A stretch of 64,000 nt of DNA from Pelomyxa schiedti. Taxonomy: Eukaryota > Protista > Evosea. Below, in pieces: positions 3,231-59,311 of the stretch. Location: positions 53,789 to 117,788 of the forward strand of contig JAHLWZ010000814.1 of NCBI GenBank assembly GCA_020536535.1. Reading direction: 5' to 3'. Within the stretch, counting starts at the first letter, position 1. Every line of letters begins with the position of its first letter. Under the pieces are notes generated by a model. The model was not told the origin of the DNA. It searched no databases and saw nothing but the letters and a program-made list of their open reading frames with translations. A program made the translations under genes and the position numbers.

Positions 3231-6200
3231 ATGTCATTTCAAGATCGATTTGCTTCTAGAAGCTGGGTGACAACTTGGGAAACTTGCCCTGGTTCTGTCT
3301 GGCCCACTTTTCTGTACGACCATTTAAGAGTGAGAGAAAAAGACCAAAGCAACATAAAAAAAACCCAAAAAAGCAACACGATGAAGGGCCACATTCCCTC
3401 CACACAAACCGACCCGCAGTCTCAACAGCCACAGCAACAAGAACGAAACCAAGCAAGTTATGGGACCCCTCCTCCAGCAACTGCGACGGTGGCGACATCT
3501 GCAACTACTTCAACAAGGGCCGATTCCCTTGGTCCTACTTTTGCTGCTCCGATTCCCGTTTCCGGAGTGGGTGCTGCTTCTTGTTCGTCGACGAGCCTGG
3601 GTTATGGGAACCAAAGGGACACGTCCACTGCAGCCTATTCCAAAGTTACTGTGAAAGTCATTTTTGATAGCAACTCTGGGAGGCCTTCCCCATCAAGAGT
3701 TGTCAGGGAGCTTAATGCCAATTTTGCCTCTACATTTGGCTCTGGAGTAGTTTCGTCGTGCTCAGATAGGTATTCTGGTTGGAGCTATCCTATTACTTTT
3801 GCAAATCCTGAAATTGCAAGGCACTTGTTGGGTCTAAGCTGGTAGTGTCTAGCCAAACTTTTTTTTTTTTTTTTGTTTTTCTAACACTCGAATAGCATTA
3901 CAATTCAGGGAGTTAGAGCACAAATCCGCAAGTATCGCTTAAAGTCTCCCTATGACCAAGAAATGGAAGCTATTTTGGCACCACATAATATTCGAAAAGA
4001 CATCACCATCTCAATAAAACATGGGAGCAGTGCAACTCTCATAAATACTTCTGTTATGTACACTCTGAAAATTACCAATGATGGCTCTAGACCTTTTGAC
4101 GTGTATTATGTGAGGTTGGTTCACCCTATGTTTTTTTTTAGGTTTATCTCAACGTCCTGTTAGGAGACTGGGAAGTGGAAACTTCTATCTTCACAAACCC
4201 CGTACAGGCATAATAGCTCGTTGGTATCCCGTTTCAGTGATTGCATTAACACTCCATAGAAACAATTCTGCCCGAGAAATCAAAAATTGTGAATGTAGAG
4301 TTTAAATCGGCAAAAAAAGGGGTTTGTTTCGCCATTGAAGCCTAATTGCTTACATTACAAGACTTTCACAGCTGTGTTTATTTTTGATACTTCTATTGGC
4401 AGTGCGGCTACTACAATGTTCTGTGTTGCTAGCAAGCTCAAACCTCCCTGCCAGAAGGCCCCCACTACAGTAGAGTAAGTAGCATACTCTAATTCCGCCA
4501 TTCTTACTTCTCAACCAGTGCTCCTAAAGAGGAATCTCCCAAATTTTTACGAGTTGACTTCTTCAAGAATGTAGCTGAGGCCAAATCAAGCCATATCCAC
4601 AACAAGTACTTGCCATATGAGTGGTCTTTCCAGGTACAATACCTTTCCTATCTGAGTTGTGTAATTGAGAAATAGCCCCCAGAATATGAGCTTCCATCTG
4701 AGTTTTCTCTTGAAGAACTAAGCCAAAAAATACCTCCACGTGCAGTCAATCCGTGGGCTCAAAGGCAACTGCACAAAAACCGACTTCATGATTTGTTATG
4801 GATCGAAGAGGCACAATCTCTTCATGACCTTGAGCAATATAGCATACTCAAGGCATCACTCGGTAATTGTTTGACTCAAGATGGAAAGCAAGGTTATTCT
4901 GTCACGGTGTGTATGTAAACGGGGAAGTGTCACGTAAGTTACTTGAAACTTCAAGGTGCCCGGCATTGCAGAGAGTAGGCCGTCTGTTCAATTCAATGAT
5001 GAAATCTATGCCTCCAACGCTCAGGAGAGGGTGGAATACCAGGGATATGTTGTTGGAATTAAAAATCAAGAAGTGATCATGCAATTCAGTGACATATTTG
5101 TAAACAAGTAAGCAATTTCTTTCCTCTCTTCTGTTCGCCTGAGAAATGTAGCTTTCAGCCAAGCAAGAAATATGATATCCGTTTTTCTTTTGATCGGATG
5201 TCTATGCGAATCCTCCATTGGGCTGTTGACAACACATCATTAGATCAGATTTGGCCCAATATCTTGTCTATTGAGGAACCAAGTGCCCCAACAGTGCTAA
5301 ATGGGCTTAGCACCCAGTTTACTTTTGATAGGGAGCAAATGATGTTTATCCAGAATTGCTTTAAAAGGTGGGCAATTTTAGTTTGTTTTCAATATGTTCA
5401 TCGAGCTTTTGTTCAGATCCTCCAACAATACTCCTCAAGTTGTGTCTGGGCCTTTTGGAAGTGGTAGTTATTCTCACTCACACTTCCCCTTTCACAGCTC
5501 ACTTCTGAAAAGGGAAGACAGCAACTTTAGTGGAAATCATCAAATTGTTATTACTTTCCAGTAACAATAAAATACTTGTTGCCACCCCTACTAATAGGTG
5601 ATAACCCACTCTGTTTTCCATTGTCATTCTCAATTACTTTCAGTGCAGCGGACAGCTTTGTTCTTTCCCTGTCAAAAATATTACCCCTGGACTACCTTAA
5701 AGTGAATTTACTACGTCTGGTTTACTTCCGCAGGTGAAGGGATATCTTGGGAAGACCTAACTAAAGTCTCAAAAATTTTTTTTTGCCCTTTTGATGAAGG
5801 CATCGATCCACTGTACCATCATTTGTCCTGCCCTTCACAATATATGACGACAAGCTGGACATGTTTTCGCTTCCACCCCTGTCCAAACTGCTGCAGTACA
5901 AGATAATCATTACCACAAGGTAACACTCAACAAAGCACTTCAAGTTTCATCCAACCCTTCGGCAAAGTCTCACTGCTGCGTATCTTGCCTTTGCTGGAGT
6001 CGGAAAAGATTTTTTTACTCACATCATTCTTGATGAGGCTGCTCAAATGTCAGAACCTGATGCGCTTGTAGCACTCAGTTTAGCAACATCTTCAACACGT
6101 GTATTCCTTTCTGGTGATGCCAAACAACTTTCATCACGTGTGAGATCTCGGACGGCCAGAAAAATGGGTCTTCAAACATCTCTTCTGGTTGAATACTTGT

Positions 6201-8941
6201 GATTTTCTCCCAAACTTACCTCACACAGGAAAGAATACTTGCTCTAGACGCATATATGTCTGATACTCAATTTCAGACCCATGTTCAGGTTTCTGTTGCC
6301 CTTTCTAGTCCGTATTTTTCTTAAGGATGATTAAACCAATCATTTAGTTGTACTCGAATTATAGGAGCCATCCTGGGATCGTCCAACTCTGTTCTGAAAT
6401 ATTTTATGGCGGAACTATAAAACCTATTAATCGTGTCGAAAACCCCAAATATAATGTACTTCCCGATGTACATTTAGTTACAGGACTTATGTGGGTGATC
6501 GGGGATTTGGGGAAAACAGTGGTTAATATCCTGGAAACCGTTTTTGAGCAAGCCAAGCAACCCAGTCGCTTTCGTTGCGAGCCACGCCCCCGAGCAAAGT
6601 GATCCTGACTCCCCCTCGTTTTTTAATGCTGGAGAAGCTCAATTGGTTGTACCTTTTTCCAAAGTTGTGCTTTTGCCAATTCTGAGGGCAGATTTGTTCT
6701 TTGATCCAAGAAGTATTATCAAAATCTTCAGACCTTGCACCAGATCCATCAGATATTGCAGTCGTCTGCCCTTTCCAACTTCAAAAGAAGAAAGTGCGTG
6801 AAGTGCTGAGGGCAGCTTCTCTAAGGCAAGAAAATACATTAACTCATAGTCTTAATTTGCTTTAGTCGTGTAAGTGTTCTGGGTGTTGATGAAATACAAG
6901 GGCAGGAGAAGAAAATCATTTTCGTGAGCTGTGTGCGCAGTGAGCCCTCGAATGTAAAGAAATATGACCAAAAGTAAGTTCTATCATCAGGCCTTTACTT
7001 TTTACTCACATGACTGAAGATTTGATGTGGGATTCATCAACAATCCCAAGAGAGTGAACACGACGTTTTCACGAGCAAAAGGTTTGAAAATTACTCTTGC
7101 CCGCGGTATGTGACCATTTTTTCCAGACTGCCTTGTAATTGTTGGAAATCCAAATGCACTCTGTTGTGACAATTTGTGGAAGACTATCATTGGTTGGTGC
7201 AAAGAAAACGCCAACTACAAGGAAGTTCCAAAACCATCGAGTATCACTTGTCCTGCACTGCATGCTGACATAGAAATACCAATAATATCAAAACTTTCCC
7301 CAAATCCAGAGATGGATTTTGAAGAAATGAACACTCAAACTACACCGCTTCAGAGTGTGCACCAGGTCATGGTTAAGTTGTCCAATAACTCACTGACTGA
7401 CGCTCCCAGCAGGTATGTGAGGACTTCTGGAAGGAACCAATTCAGTCGTGTCAACTTGACTTGAGCACTCTTTCCAACACCTGGGCAGAAGTCAAAATTA
7501 ACGAACCCGAATTCGTTTCCTGTGTGTTGGGTCATTTCCCTTCTAAGTTTCCTGATTTTCCCTCGATAGTGGCTCACTTTGGTGACAGCTGGCATCCTTA
7601 CACTCTTATGCGATCCCTGCCAGGGGCTCCCCTACCTCCTGAAACCCATTTTGAGAGAGGGAATTTCTTCAACATGTTCATTTTTTTCCCCGTCATCTAC
7701 CTTGAGTATTTGCCTTCTGCCTTTTTCACCAAATAACTTTCCTTTCTCAGAGTCAAGAGGACATTAGTAGATACGTTATATTTATGTGTCAACAAGTCTT
7801 TCCAAATGGAGCTAAGATTACCTCCAAAATATGTATCTCAACATTCTACAAGAGATAGTCTCAATTTCCCTAGGATGTGAACACCTGCTGTCTGAATGTT
7901 TCTAGGCCACCTTTTGCCTTGTCAGATATTATCTTCATCTCAGCAAAGGAAAGAATGATGTTTGCCTATCCACAAAGGACACCACCTCCTCAACTAAATT
8001 CTAGTCATAACCTTTATTCGCAAGAAAGAGCCAACACCTGCGCCACAGCCCCTTCGCATCTGCCAGCACAACCTCAAGTCCAAACACAACAGCCAGCTCA
8101 CCCGCTTCCAGTATCGCCTAAACCTCAATCTGAGGCCCCAGCACCAGAACGGGATACAAGGTCAGAACCTCAGCCAGTACCCAAGCCCCTTGAGAAAAAC
8201 AAAACGCAGCCACAGTCAGTAAAGTCCAAAACAAAGTCCAAAAGTTCCCCTAAACGCACAACCAAACAACCCCCAAGTAGCACAGAGCCAAATCTTTCAC
8301 AAAATCAACTCAAATCCGAATCCCAACTACCTCCATCGCAAACAACAAGTTCCTCTACAACAAGGTCTAAAAGAAAGCCCAAGTCCAAGTCAAAGCCAGA
8401 ACCTAAGCCTAAGGTTGAGGCCAACAAAACTCCCACACAACCAATTCCCCAGACACAAATCCCCAATCAGCAACAGCAACAGCAACAGCAACAAAACCAA
8501 AAGCAACACACAATAATCATTACTCGCAAAAAAGAAATGCTTCCTCCTGCTCCTCCCAAAACAACTGTGGCTCAGACCAAAACCAATCTCAAACAAAAAC
8601 AAAAAGTTCAATCACAGCCCGCCACACCTGCATCCAATGCGAACACTACAAAAGCCACAACCACCAAAGCAGGAACACCAACAATACTAAAGTCAAAAGC
8701 AAACACCAACACCAACACCAACACCAAAACCAAAACCAAAACCAAAAACAAAACCACAACAACAACCACAGCAACAACAGCACCCTCACTAAAGCCCCAG
8801 GCAAAACTGCATGTTCCTAGTTTGGGTGCTTCTCAATTATCACCATCATCCACAGCAAAACCAGTAGAAGTTCACGCTCAAGCAACAGCCAAACCCAACA
8901 CTCCACAACAAACTAGCACAAAACGCCAGCACAAATCCTGA
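3231..8941 (+). CDS. MOV10: MOV10/SDE3/Armitage-like SF1 (UPF1-family) RNA helicase with long P/Q/T/K-rich C-terminal tail
   Basis: LHDLLWIEE, VPGIAESRPSV, Walker A SGPFGSGKTATLVEII, ILDEAAQ, GDAKQL, NYRSHPGIV, FFNAGEA, VDEIQGQEKKIIFVSCVRS, GFINNPKRVNTTFSRAK, VGNPNAL. Joining of the 7877-8941 tail is inferred; it could be a separate gene or continue past the gap. Confidence 0.82.
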
Positions 8942-54175: not shown

Positions 54176-54950
54176 CAATTGTTTTATTGTAAAAACAAAG
54201 CTACTTGTTGGAATGTGTTGACTGTGGCCTCAATGACCACTGTTAATTGTACACAGCAACACAAACCATGTTTCTGACCAACATGGGGAAAAAAAGAAAC
54301 AAAAAAATGGATTGGTGCTCTATAGAGGAGCTGTTGGTGATTGGGTAACATGCGAAATTGGATGGGAAATCAGCCTGTGACAGCCAAGGGCCCCACCCAG
54401 TTTTGTAAGACCAACCGGGTAAACCCGGCCGGCCCACCCTACCTGTAACCTCCTTTCTCAGTCTCCGCCTGCCCCAGTCGCCAGAAATAGGCGCACGTGA
54501 CAGGATGACGTCGGCTGTGGGTACCGGTTTTTCAGTGGCGTGGCGGGATGGGTTCCCGTCACTCCCGGTTGATGTCCAACCCACACCAGGAAGATTTGCC
54601 CACGTACGCCCACGACGAAAAGATTTCTCCGTGAGGCACGCAGCCGAGTCGTCGAATTTCGAGATTAAAGATCGCAGGGGGATTTCTTTTTAGTGCGAGT
54701 TGATGGAAAACTTTTTATTTTTTGCCAGCTTGAGTAGTTCATTTCGATGCAGCACGTTCACATTTGAGCACCATTTATTCAACCACCCCACTTCACACCA
54801 ATCCAAAAACCTTCCCCGCGGCCCAGCCTCTTAAGCGCCAAAATTACATGTACAGAAGGATTGTGGGATTGGACGGTTGTGTTTGAGTGGCTTGTTAATT
54901 TTATTCAAAAAAGAAAAAAAAAGAGCAACAGACACAGAACAAGTTTTAAT

Positions 54951-57798
54951 TTACTCCCAGTTTCTTGGTGTGTGTTAGTGGGGTGTATCAGTGGAGAAAG
55001 AACGTACTCTTTGAGAATTCCAAGTTTGATTGCTGTGGCAATAGTCTTCTGTGCTCGGAGAACAACCGGGCGATCTATCATTTTTGCACCAAGGGCCACA
55101 ACTCCGGATGCACCTGCCTTGTTAAACGCTCTTACAATGTCCTTTGCACGGGTGAGCTCTTGTTCAGTGGGTGCAAAACAACTGTTGCAAATCGTTATCT
55201 AATGTGTAGTCGGTTATAACACCCTCCAGCGAAAATGGAACTTTACCTGCTTGGGGTGGACACATCGTTTGCCAACATAACCCAAAGACTTGGCCAAAGT
55301 GATGCTTGTTTTGAGACCATCGATGTTTCCAAAGTCACCAAAAACAGTGTCAAGAGGAGGAACTCTTGCAGCATGAGCGGCATTTGCCAGACGCCGGATT
55401 GCATAGGAAGATTCTTCGTTGGAAGGGGACTTGATCATACCACAGTCCGCAGTATAATCCTCTAGACCCTAAGGGAAAGATTAGAGTGATCAAGTGACGA
55501 TTGTACATGCCATGCAAATTCCAAGGATATGATGAGGAGGGCGGAGAATGTCATTGATGTTTTCAATTCCAACTGCGGTTTCGATCAGCGGGAACAAGGC
55601 CACTCTAGAAGATTCCCACTTGCACACTTGGCATATATGACTCTCTAGGATTTCAATTTCCCTCCTAATGTCTACCTAGAGCAAACTTTAAGACGAATAA
55701 ATGGAGTAATAGAAGAATTACTTTAGGAATCACCAGCCCATCGACGTGGCAATATGGAAGGATTACAGAAATATCTTGCAGACCTTCTGCTCCCTGGTTT
55801 ATTCTCACTAGTCTCTCAGCGTTTCTGAAGTCAAGTGCACGCAAGGCATTTCTCACCTTTTCCGTGTGAGAAATATATTTTCACTAGAGTGAGTACAAGT
55901 ATTCTGGATGCCGCTTTCAAAGGAGGGGCAACAGCATCCTCTAGGTCAAAGATAGCCCCGTCTTCTCCAGAGGAGCCTGCCTTGCTCATCATATAGGGAT
56001 CTCGTCCAGGAATATAAAGCTGTGACCTTCTCAGATGATCGGGATTTATTGCTGGGAAAAGGATGAGGTTTTTTCAGTGGATTTATGTATACCTATTGTG
56101 GACTGATCTGGAACATTAGGATCAAGGGGTAACAAGAAAGGCGGAGCTTGAAGAACTTCAGGGAATGTGCATTTCACTGCATGCTCTATTCTTGCCGCCA
56201 TTACCCATGGAAGGGAAGAGCAATCCCCAATTGTCACAGTAACCGACTGCCTGGGGTTGGAGAAGTGAGGAGAGAAGTGGCTGAGAATCCTGGTCGCCAG
56301 TTCTACTGCCTCTGCTTCCGAGACAAATGCGTTTCTATCATAAGACTGTACTTTAACCTGAAGAAGGTTAATTTATTGCGCAGTGGTTTGAGAGCAAACC
56401 CCATAGATAGAGGTTCCTAAGTCTTGCTTTTCCACTTTTACAGTACAATCACACCTCAAATCTTTAGGTCGGTGCAGAGGTTCCCTGACCACATCCAAGA
56501 CGGTACCATCTCGCCATTCAATTACACCAATAATGCGGTCTGTTGGAGGTTAAAGAATATGCTTTCTTTCGAAGAAGGGAAACCTGTTGTTTTTGGTGGT
56601 AGTGCAACGCGACCTGCCTTTCTATACCCAATATCCCTTAGTTCTTGTATGGTCTACAGCAAACAACATTGGAAAAATATTTCAAGGGAAAAAATTACGA
56701 ACTTTGAGTTTCAATTCATCTGCATACGGAGCAAGTTTTTCCAGTAGATCTTTGCGCTGAGGATTGATAGCAATACCCTCGTCTGTGACAATTACATGAA
56801 TGCATTCACCCTTTTTCTCCATCAGTCTAATGACTTGAAAGATTGATTTAACATACAGGGGTTGTGATTGAAACAACATTATCAACAACAATGGGGTTAA
56901 TGCCACGAGCAACAGGGCAAGTAATAATTGTCAATTTCGATCCGGCAGCAGTATCCTGGTGCTTGGTCAGTCGAACAACGGTGCTCTAATTTTTCACCTG
57001 ATGGCCGCCAATCCCATGAAGTAAGTATCCATCAGCATGAGTGTTGACATTGCAGTTAAAATTGACATCGACCTTAAGGCTTTAAACACTCTTATTTTTT
57101 CTTCTCGGGGAAAAAAAATCACCTCGGTAGCGCCAAGTACAACAACGTCTAAGAGGTTAACCACAGCACCCCTATTTAAAGGGTTTGCATACTGGTCAAT
57201 ATCAATTTCGCAGTGGACCTTTTGGGTTTGTATGTAAGTTCATAAGTATTTGTAGATAAATGGAATGCCTTGGGATCATCACGGAGGGACTCCACAGCTG
57301 GAATATCAAATGCTTGACAAGTTGAAAGCTTCTTCACTAGCCCCTAAAGAGTTGAGTAAGAATTGGGGTGGTATAACAATCAAAAACCTTGCGTAACATG
57401 TCTACTAAAATGGCTGTGGTCCCACCATTGGCCCATCCAGCAACAATTTTGTTTGCCTGCATTATTTCGGACAAGAATTTTACTGATGTCAAGGAACTTC
57501 CACCTGCTCCAGCTTGGAGGCCGAAACCATTCTTTACATATCCTGCTCGATAGGCACACTAGTGTGCAAGTGAGAAATTAGGGGGAAATAAAAACAGTTA
57601 CCAATGCAGCAAGCCGTGAGCTCTCAAGAGCTTCATCAGTATCTGCAATACGCGTGGTTCCAGAAACAATTTTCTTTGGGTCACCAATTGAGTCCACTTT
57701 GACTACAAAGTCCACAAGCGTGCTGGGAATTGAGATTGGGATGCAAGGGTACTCCATTAGGTAATCAGTTACAACAATGACCTATTGTAGATAGATTA

Positions 57799-57831
<33 letters not shown>

Positions 57832-59111
57832 GGAGGGTGCCAACCCGTGATGCACATCGGGCATCAATGTTAGAATATGCTAGAGGTCCACATGCACTCT
57901 TCCCAAGTACACCATTGGCATTGCCATATTCATCTGCACATGGTGCAGCTATAACCTTTAGTTCAGATGTTACGGAAATAAAGGGAATGGTTTTGAAAAT
58001 ACAGCAATATCGATTCTAAGGTCGCCTTGCATAATAGCACGGACACGGCCACCATGAGACCTCAGAACAGCAGGTGTTGGAATTCCTCCCTCGGAAGCAA
58101 GCATTCCCTATCGTATTTAGGCTTCAAAATATGTAACGAAAACCGTACAATGGCTCCATTGAGTGAACCAATGATTCCTTTTATGGTTCCTCTCTTCACC
58201 ATGTCTGCAAGGGGTGCATGCACATTAAAGAGTGCTGTTGGTGCAATAGTAATATCTTTAACCCCAAGTTGCTCCACGGCAGTCATGCACTGAAGGACAA
58301 CAGCATCACCTTCTCTGTGAGAAAAGTCACAGTTGTATTACGGTTCAAAAGAAAAACCTCAAGTGATGGTGGAAAGAAAGAGTCATTCCATTTCGAAGAC
58401 CGCAAGCCACAAGTGCTTCCCTCAGAGTTGCAATCATCTTACTCTGTCCTGGAATGACAACATGTTTTGGTGTGAGCATTCCATTTGGCTGGAAAGTGGG
58501 GGATGTAGTAGCCGTTGGAGTTGTGAGTGCATGTGCGCCCATAAACGGGGTTACTTTGCCGTATCCAGGAATGAACCTAATCAATTTCAATTAGCAAGGA
58601 ATTTTTCTCATGCAAAGTAATATGTTGAAATGGCGTACTTTGGAAGAACTCTGCCACAAGCGTTGGTCACTGTATCAAGGCTGGCAGTAGCATAAGAAAT
58701 GGGAGTAGAAGTGGAAACAGAGCTAGGAACGGAAGGAGTGGTAGAGGAAACAGTCGTGGTAGTAGAAACGGCGGGGCTAACGCTCTCTGGTTGTGGCTCT
58801 GTTGCAGGTTTCTTAGGCTTCTTGTTTTTGCGTTTCTTTTTGGCGGCAGTTTGATCAGACGGCTGGACCGGCGTTGCTTGTGCCTCTGTTGCAGCTGGGG
58901 TGGCCGCCGCAGTTTGGAGTGGAGTCGTCAGAGTAGTGCTGGCGGCAGGCGGCGCCTTAGTTGCCACAACGGCCGGGGTTGGTGTGGGCTGAGGTGTCAC
59001 CGCCGCAACAGGTGTTGCGTTGACTTGCGGTGTTTGCGTAGGTGGCTGTGCTACCACCGGCTCCGCTGTAGGTGTTACGGACGCAGTGTTCTTCTTTTTG
59101 CTTCTCGGCAT
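54951..59111 (-). CDS. citF-citD-citE: Citrate lyase alpha-gamma-beta fusion (CitF-CitD-CitE) with basic, P/T/A-rich N-terminal extension
   Basis: CitF: LRNGMTLSFHHHLRNGD, GDPKKIVSGTTRI, IIGVIEWRDGTVLDVV; CitD-like: LRCDCTV...VTIGDCSSLPWVMAARIEHAV; CitE: LRRSQLYIPG, AIFDLEDAVAP, VRNAL, LIETAVG, GLEDYTAD, GKRCVHPKQ, ALGAKMIDRPV; many introns. Confidence 0.88.
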
Positions 59112-59211
59112 CTTACGTAAGTGGCGCACGCTGAAGAGGTACGTGCGGGGGGCTTTTTTTTTGTTTTTGTTTGTTGCGAATGGTTGTTTTTAGGCGTTTC
59201 CTTAAAGCAGG

Positions 59212-59311
59212 NNNNNNNNNNNNNNNNNNNNNNNNNNNNNNNNNNNNNNNNNNNNNNNNNNNNNNNNNNNNNNNNNNNNNNNNNNNNNNNNNNNNNNNNN
59301 NNNNNNNNNNN
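59212..59311. other. Assembly gap (100 N)
   Basis: N run next to very GC-rich sequence; probably hides the RRP4 start codon. Confidence 0.95.

Follow-up and report, generated by a model that had tools for sequence, protein, structure and literature searches.

A CitF–CitD-like–CitE fusion of Pelomyxa schiedti as a putative single-chain, ATP-independent citrate lyase

As described in textbooks, citrate lyase is a bacterial complex of three subunits, dependent on an unusual prosthetic group that resembles coenzyme A (CoA) and on three helper enzymes. In a 64,000-nucleotide (nt) stretch of Pelomyxa schiedti DNA (the window; contig JAHLWZ010000814.1 of assembly GCA_020536535.1) we analysed a minus-strand gene, 54951..59111 from ATG to stop, in which counterparts of the three subunits are joined in one chain in the order CitF, CitD-like, CitE. 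The CitD-like domain has an arginine at the canonical serine attachment site, and we lean towards the view that the protein may work on free acetyl-CoA. Triple fusions of this kind turned up in seven or more anaerobic protist genera as well as in many environmental sequences. The bacterial CitD–CitE fusions and their eukaryotic single-chain descendants form a branch of the family that appears to manage without the cofactor machinery, and the single-chain form, if active, would offer a simple object for the study of cofactor-free citrate lyase.

Transcript and domains of the fused gene

Reading the minus strand of 54800–59250 gave a 21-exon model, 59111..54951, that yields an uninterrupted protein of 1077 amino acids (aa). 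The protein is identical, residue for residue and over its full length, to P0005, an NCBI entry named 'ATP-citrate lyase [Pelomyxa schiedti]'. RNA support was taken from contigs assembled from three single-cell RNA-seq runs, all belonging to one study; the predicted joints are present in these contigs. A single spliced contig of 2456 nt extends from exon 20 to exon 3 and spans both the boundary between CitF and the CitD-like segment and that between the CitD-like segment and CitE. The three parts thus lie, as the initial annotation had proposed, on one transcribed and spliced frame. Since there are zero differing letters in this contig, the fused reading frame and the unchanged codons of the RCDC motif discussed below both exist in RNA. 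The domain boundaries first given also agree with ours to within a few bases (CitF 58664–56472, CitD-like 56471–56145, CitE 56049–54954).

The CitF domain (citrate lyase alpha, citrate CoA-transferase; aa 150–672, exons 1–14, 56472..58664, minus strand as are all features of the gene) is recognised by Pfam PF04223 in the whole protein at aa 203–669 with an E-value of 3.7e-143, covering profile positions 2–465 of 466. Searches against the PDB matched it to 2hj0 and 1xr4 with E-values of 1e-123 to 1e-127. Compared with 79 prokaryotic CitF sequences, it keeps 89 of the 96 columns whose prokaryotic conservation is 95% or higher, and the seven deviating columns are common to the protein of Mastigella. 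The CitE domain (citrate lyase beta, citryl-CoA lyase, with the HpcH_HpaI fold; aa 786–1077, exons 16–21, 54954..56049) is matched by Pfam PF03328 at aa 793–1008 (E 7e-37, covering 1–221 of 221) and, on exon 19, by TIGR01588 (citE); 44 of the 51 columns with 90% or higher conservation among 55 prokaryotic CitE sequences are retained. For the exons tested, the NCBIfam equivalog models citF (TIGR01584) and citE (TIGR01588) were the top matches. Because most of the conserved CitF and CitE columns are kept, both catalytic parts look functional, as judged from the alignments.

The segment between them (aa 673–767, exons 14–15, 56145..56471) is assigned as a CitD-like domain, that is, a gamma subunit or acyl carrier protein (ACP)-like domain, from a CitD hidden Markov model (HMM), from invariant columns and from an AlphaFold2 (AF2) model. 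With the Pfam ACP family (PF06857) the match stayed below threshold, at E 0.059 on the exon with nothing on the whole protein, and NCBIfam gave nothing. For the comparison we took CitDs from 80 prokaryotic CitF loci (L001–L080), which provided 54 CitDs with 20 canonical ES-type loci and 29 loci with CitD–CitE fusions. An HMM built from the 54 prokaryotic sequences alone matches aa 677–761 with E about 1e-6. Pelomyxa retains each of the four columns that show no variation among 32 CitD-type sequences, and aligned relatives exceed the Pfam ACP cut-off of 25.1 bits (Barthelona 26.9, Kipferlia 28.3). Together these results support homology of the middle segment to CitD.

An AF2 model of aa 664–772 has a mean predicted local distance difference test score (pLDDT) of 86.9 and a predicted template modelling score (pTM) of 0.80, and it has the beta-beta-alpha-beta-alpha carrier fold seen in MdcC, the malonate decarboxylase carrier (PDB 5vit/5vj1). 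MdcC belongs to the same Pfam family as CitD, is the only carrier of that family to have been solved, and bears its prosthetic group on Ser25 (PMC5534430). The model superposes on MdcC (5vit_C) with a Z score of 6.0 and a root mean square deviation of 2.7 Å (75 of 97 residues superposed, 19% identical), a match that ranks 23rd with the slower structure aligner, many unrelated chains with an arrangement like that of S5 domain 2 scoring similarly. A Foldseek search of the domain model against the PDB gave no clear match. PDB sequence searches with the CitD exon, a canonical CitD and a canonical CitD profile gave no significant match, and a mixed profile reached MdcC at an E-value of 0.32 only. 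The full-length AF2 model (mean pLDDT 71) served for secondary structure only.

The carrier site of the CitD-like domain

One aspartate is invariant in all 54 prokaryotic CitDs, and its equivalent in Pelomyxa is Asp680. In the canonical stand-alone CitDs of Clostridia and Synergistota the preceding sequence reads G-T-x-E-S-x-D, with Gly10, Thr11, Glu13, Ser14 and Asp16 invariant and the motif ES[NGM]D around the site. Ser14, the known attachment site of the prosthetic group 2'-(5''-phosphoribosyl)-3'-dephospho-CoA, stands two residues before the aspartate (Asp−2). In Pelomyxa the leucine at this point is followed by Arg678, Cys679, Asp680 and Cys681, whose codons are at 56445..56456. There is no serine two residues before the invariant aspartate; instead Arg678 occupies the Ser14 position and Cys679 lies at Asp−1. 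The glycine six residues before the aspartate stands at the same distance in both CitD types and the hydrophobic pattern is kept in the strand that follows; the register is therefore firm. A register in which the serine of the bacterial fusion-type motif RSDC is laid on Ser14 was rejected, as it breaks the invariant aspartate, the upstream glycine and the hydrophobic periodicity of the next strand. In MdcC the sequence alignment likewise puts Ser25 two residues before the conserved aspartate, where Pelomyxa has the arginine.

The initial annotation had described the site as a carrier serine replaced by cysteine. This holds for the motif of the bacterial fusions: RSDC is real, Pelomyxa reads RCDC, and Cys679 stands in for the serine at Asp−1. 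It does not hold for the canonical site, which is Arg678, the cysteine coming one residue later. The RCDC codons are present and unaltered in the RNA contigs, at 56456–56445, one base off the figure first reported.

In the bacterial fusions themselves this serine varies. Among the 29 CitD–CitE fusions Asp−2 is lysine or arginine in most, and a serine occurs there in two TSSD sequences only. Asp−1 is serine in about two thirds and otherwise glycine, alanine, asparagine, glutamine or glutamate, and nine of the 29 have no serine at either position. The alignments of these fusions give no support for the Asp−1 serine as a carrier of the prosthetic group. Five CitF columns only separate the partners of canonical CitDs from the partners of CitD–CitE fusions, and at these the eukaryotic proteins are mixed. 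Outside the fusions, the stand-alone CitDs of Thermoplasmata read EKGD, with serine at neither position, and among L001–L080 many CitF genes of Calditrichota and Thermoplasmatota have no CitE or CitD gene directly upstream. A carrier-less state may be widespread in prokaryotes.

Relatives and predicted reaction

The fusion is not special to Pelomyxa: besides its occurrence in at least seven anaerobic protist genera, several of the fusion proteins have database names that already read 'citrate lyase alpha (and beta)'. A library-wide query with the CitD-like exon brought up a protein of 943 aa in Mastigella eilhardi and, in an uncultured relative, a gene fragment of 129 aa. Two further matches (P0003 and P0004) were long repetitive proteins with many short matched stretches and were set aside as spurious. 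The fragment is part of a eukaryotic contig of 324 kb, where it has pieces of CitF upstream and pieces of CitE downstream. At 6001–6390 of that locus (L083) a single open frame of 129 aa runs across the position of the Pelomyxa exon-14/15 boundary with no intron, so the intron at this boundary is not shared. The Mastigella protein (P0002) is 69% identical to that of Pelomyxa and also carries RCDC. Used in turn as a query, it brought up triple fusions of 900–960 aa in many environmental assemblies and in named protists. The latter are Mastigamoeba balamuthi (P0012), a second Mastigella copy (P0009), Paratrimastix pyriformis (P0007/KAJ4455428), Kipferlia bialata (P0017) and two strains of Barthelona (P0006 and P0014). 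A 952-aa protein of the motif-less group described below (P0132; L084, L085 and L086) is encoded on intron-poor eukaryotic contigs from gut metagenomes, where its gene adjoins CHD1-like, eIF5B-like and CLU genes.

All of these proteins share the CitF–CitD–CitE order of Pelomyxa and the motif differs by group. Barthelona and Kipferlia have LKSDC or LKSDV, and LRCDC is found only in Pelomyxa, Mastigella and the one uncultured relative. In the largest eukaryotic group, which holds Mastigamoeba, Paratrimastix, the second Mastigella copy and many environmental sequences, both the serine and the aspartate are lost (LG-SHA or LGINNA) while the CitF and CitE domains are still conserved. A transcript of Stygiella incarcerata (P0019) has a single frame with a different order, Aconitase_C–CitD (VKSDC)–CitE–CitF, which is the bacterial operon order. 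A word-based protein search with its CitD segment gave no matches. Anaeramoeba has a stand-alone CitF.

Trees were made from quick searches and carry no outgroups. All 16 eukaryotic fusions in the CitF tree fall into a single clade (support 90). This clade is nested in a larger group, itself strongly supported, that also takes in Anaeramoeba, Stygiella and a few unplaced sequences; one of the latter sits on a clearly bacterial contig. In the CitE tree the eukaryotic fusions group with Stygiella (98) and are sister (95) to 13 prokaryotic CitD–CitE fusions of the xRSDC type, whose hosts include Ignavibacteriota, Chloroflexota and Zixibacteria. Seven of these 13 loci adjoin aconitase-family or LeuCD-like genes, which echoes the aconitase piece of the Stygiella protein. 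A bacterial CitE–CitD fusion has been noted before in Ignavibacterium album (IALB_1146/1147; PMC3362086). The clustering of the CitE domain with prokaryotic fusions agrees with the bacterial type first suggested for the gene, and we read the gene as one of the bacterial 'CitF + CitD–CitE fusion' type that was probably acquired laterally. This two-gene bacterial form is the closest relative of the CitD-like and CitE parts of Pelomyxa and shares the x-[KR]-S-D-C architecture with lysine or arginine at the serine site. Pelomyxa differs from it in that CitF is fused N-terminally to CitD–CitE, in the change of the motif serine to cysteine, and in an additional low-complexity N-terminus of 149 aa.

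Against the better known bacterial system, in which CitD, CitE and CitF are accompanied by the acetylating ligase CitC and by CitX and CitG, the machinery that makes the holo-carrier (Klebsiella pneumoniae and E. coli, with Clostridium and Synergistota loci, L028 among them, as its representatives here), the three Pelomyxa parts are homologous to CitF, CitE and CitD, and ATP-independent cleavage of citrate, predicted for Pelomyxa, would be common to both. The differences from the three-subunit enzyme are the single chain, the arginine at the Ser14 site with a cysteine beside it, and the 20 spliceosomal introns.

We consider it moderately likely that the Pelomyxa protein is a single-chain, ATP-independent citrate lyase that uses free acetyl-CoA and has no prosthetic group, its CitD-like domain remaining as a scaffold or relic. 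We favour free acetyl-CoA and citryl-CoA because of several observations. In prokaryotes, citC, citX or citG lie within ±8 kb of 13 of the 20 canonical ES-type loci, and none of the three was detected within ±8 kb of the 29 fusion loci (0/29), even at E ≤ 1. Some fusions have no serine in the motif. There are prokaryotic CitE–CitF fusions without any CitD (P0025, P0033, P0034 and P0040), and the largest eukaryotic group has lost the motif with its catalytic domains conserved. Dimroth, Buckel and co-workers are reported to have shown that alpha and beta, as isolated subunits, are active with acetyl-CoA and citryl-CoA (EC 2.8.3.10 and EC 4.1.3.34). In the predicted cycle the CitF domain would form citryl-CoA and acetate by moving the CoA of free acetyl-CoA onto citrate, and the CitE domain would split citryl-CoA into oxaloacetate and regenerated acetyl-CoA. 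Acetyl-CoA would thus serve as a catalyst, and the net reaction would be citrate to acetate and oxaloacetate. The CitD-like domain may be a folded relic that ties the two catalytic domains together and carries no cofactor. A likely role would be to supply oxaloacetate to the malate–fumarate–succinate branch reported for Pelomyxa. Acetyl-CoA use, citrate as the substrate and this physiological role are all what we infer. Of the two options in the initial annotation, use of free acetyl-CoA without CitC, CitG and CitX is the one that the evidence favours, with the arginine at the serine site and the 29 loci pointing to it. For the other, a cysteine thioester, the one supporting observation is that three close relatives conserve the motif.

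Several observations weigh against use of free acetyl-CoA on citrate. The absence of citC, citX and citG is a local one (8 kb, in prokaryotes) and not genome-wide, and the Pelomyxa genome was not searched for them. Twelve of the 13 prokaryotic fusions closest to the eukaryotic proteins have a serine at Asp−1, which leaves room for a shifted attachment site. The sequence HRPKDLRCDC is identical in the three sequences of group B (Pelomyxa, Mastigella and the uncultured relative) while the domain as a whole is 57–62% identical; because of this contrast the RCDC loop must be under constraint, which a pure relic would not predict. Close clostridial homologues are found in operons of glutamate fermentation and are probably citramalate lyases, which weakens the case for citrate; the Pelomyxa substrate is for this reason not proven. 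One such locus, in Clostridium liquoris (L028, 3878–12187), has genes for methylaspartate ammonia-lyase, a two-subunit fumarase-type hydratase, CitD, CitE, CitF, CitC, CitX and CitG in a row and looks like a citramalate lyase operon.

It seems improbable to us that the CitD-like domain continues to act as a covalent acyl carrier, in which Cys679 would hold a prosthetic group or form a thioester directly with an acetyl or citryl group. The identity of RCDC and its flanks in three species, set in an otherwise diverged domain, is what such a carrier would lead one to expect, and in the confidently modelled domain the RCDC loop lies just ahead of strand beta1, the carrier serine of MdcC being at the tip of the equivalent loop. 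Against this, Cys679 is one residue past the canonical serine position, and sister groups with intact catalytic domains have asparagine, isoleucine, histidine or alanine here. The known linkage of the prosthetic group is a phosphodiester to a serine hydroxyl, which also counts against a cysteine. A bare side-chain thiol would lack the long arm by which the prosthetic group reaches the active sites; those of malonate decarboxylase, two in number, are separated by about 60 Å (PMC5534430). The more specific idea that the HRPKDLRCDC loop of Pelomyxa and Mastigella is a new thiol carrier, with Cys679 acylated or cofactor-modified by an undescribed enzyme and with CitX, CitG and CitC made needless, we regard as a long shot.

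Rather unlikely, in our estimate, is a lyase for a related acid such as citramalate or another 2-hydroxy-di- or tricarboxylate, or an enzyme with a CoA donor other than acetyl-CoA. The clostridial homologues beside methylaspartate ammonia-lyase and mesaconase genes would fit such an enzyme, as would the aconitase-family and LeuCD-like genes beside seven of the 13 closest fusion loci and the N-terminal Aconitase_C of the Stygiella protein, where a partner dehydratase could act on citraconate or mesaconate instead of aconitate. The aconitase neighbours suit citrate equally, however, and the citF and citE equivalogs fit the tested exons best. As to the GenBank name, the Pfam search of P0005 gave only CitF, HpcH_HpaI and C-C_Bond_Lyase, with no ATP-grasp, no CoA-ligase or succinyl-CoA-synthetase-like and no citrate-synthase-like domain. 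The ATP-citrate lyase of the Pelomyxa paper is not this gene; it is Pelo_5333, a different protein with a different sequence. An ATP-citrate lyase has only the database name in its favour and is refuted by the domain content, and we give it practically no credence. 'ATP-citrate lyase' is a misnomer for P0005, and one that could mislead metabolic reconstructions.

The single-chain form spans distantly related protists that avoid oxygen, namely Archamoebae, several metamonads, a jakobid and protists of gut metagenomes. Literature searches found no paper that describes the triple fusion. The searchable genome and organelle papers on these organisms mention ATP-citrate lyase only and not the bacterial-type enzyme, and it is likewise not mentioned in those of their metabolic reconstructions that were searchable. 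If the protein is active, these organisms would be able to convert citrate to oxaloacetate and acetate independently of ATP, by a route that current metabolic maps lack; the map of Pelomyxa, one such case, is without citrate synthase.

Exons, introns and the N-terminal extension

The exons are, from the start codon, 59111–58639, 58576–58358, 58314–58149, 58107–58003, 57955–57845, 57781–57602 and 57558–57388 (exons 1–7), 57343–57269, 57218–57123, 57072–56998, 56955–56857, 56810–56703, 56653–56584 and 56539–56400 (exons 8–14), and 56357–56093, 56051–55897, 55856–55722, 55675–55511, 55468–55247, 55198–55008 and 54963–54951 (exons 15–21). The 20 introns between them are 40–63 nt each, 18 of them GT-AG and two GC-AG. 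The RNA contigs confirm removal of both GC-AG introns and joining of the last exon, which has 13 nt only. The Mastigella orthologue backs this last exon too, its end reading ...ADWE... against ...ENWE in Pelomyxa.

The first 149 aa (58665..59111) form an extension rich in proline, threonine, alanine and serine, with two lysine-rich clusters. It had no family match, and NCBIfam returned noise only. The extension is missing from the closest orthologue, Mastigella P0002, and among the triple fusions only Pelomyxa has it. These findings lend no support to the targeting role that the initial annotation had raised as a possibility. RNA coverage of exon 1 is restricted to its last 44 nt (58639–58682), and the sequence is interrupted by an assembly gap (a run of N) some 100 nt before the ATG, at about 59211–59310 of the window. 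For these two reasons the extension is the least certain part of the gene model. An upstream exon or promoter may be missing owing to the gap.

The GC-AG intron after exon 8 (57219..57268) has no fitting GT donor, and three RNA runs have the joint 57217/57268, with 50 nt skipped. That after exon 18 (55469..55510) is given by the model and by a joint that skips 42 nt, again in three RNA runs. GC-AG introns make up roughly 1% in most eukaryotes; here they are 2 of 20 (10%), both spliced in RNA, and the excess may be a property of the Pelomyxa genome. Intron 5 contains a run of about 50 A (57792–57841), at which the DNA assembly contigs of run X4 break.

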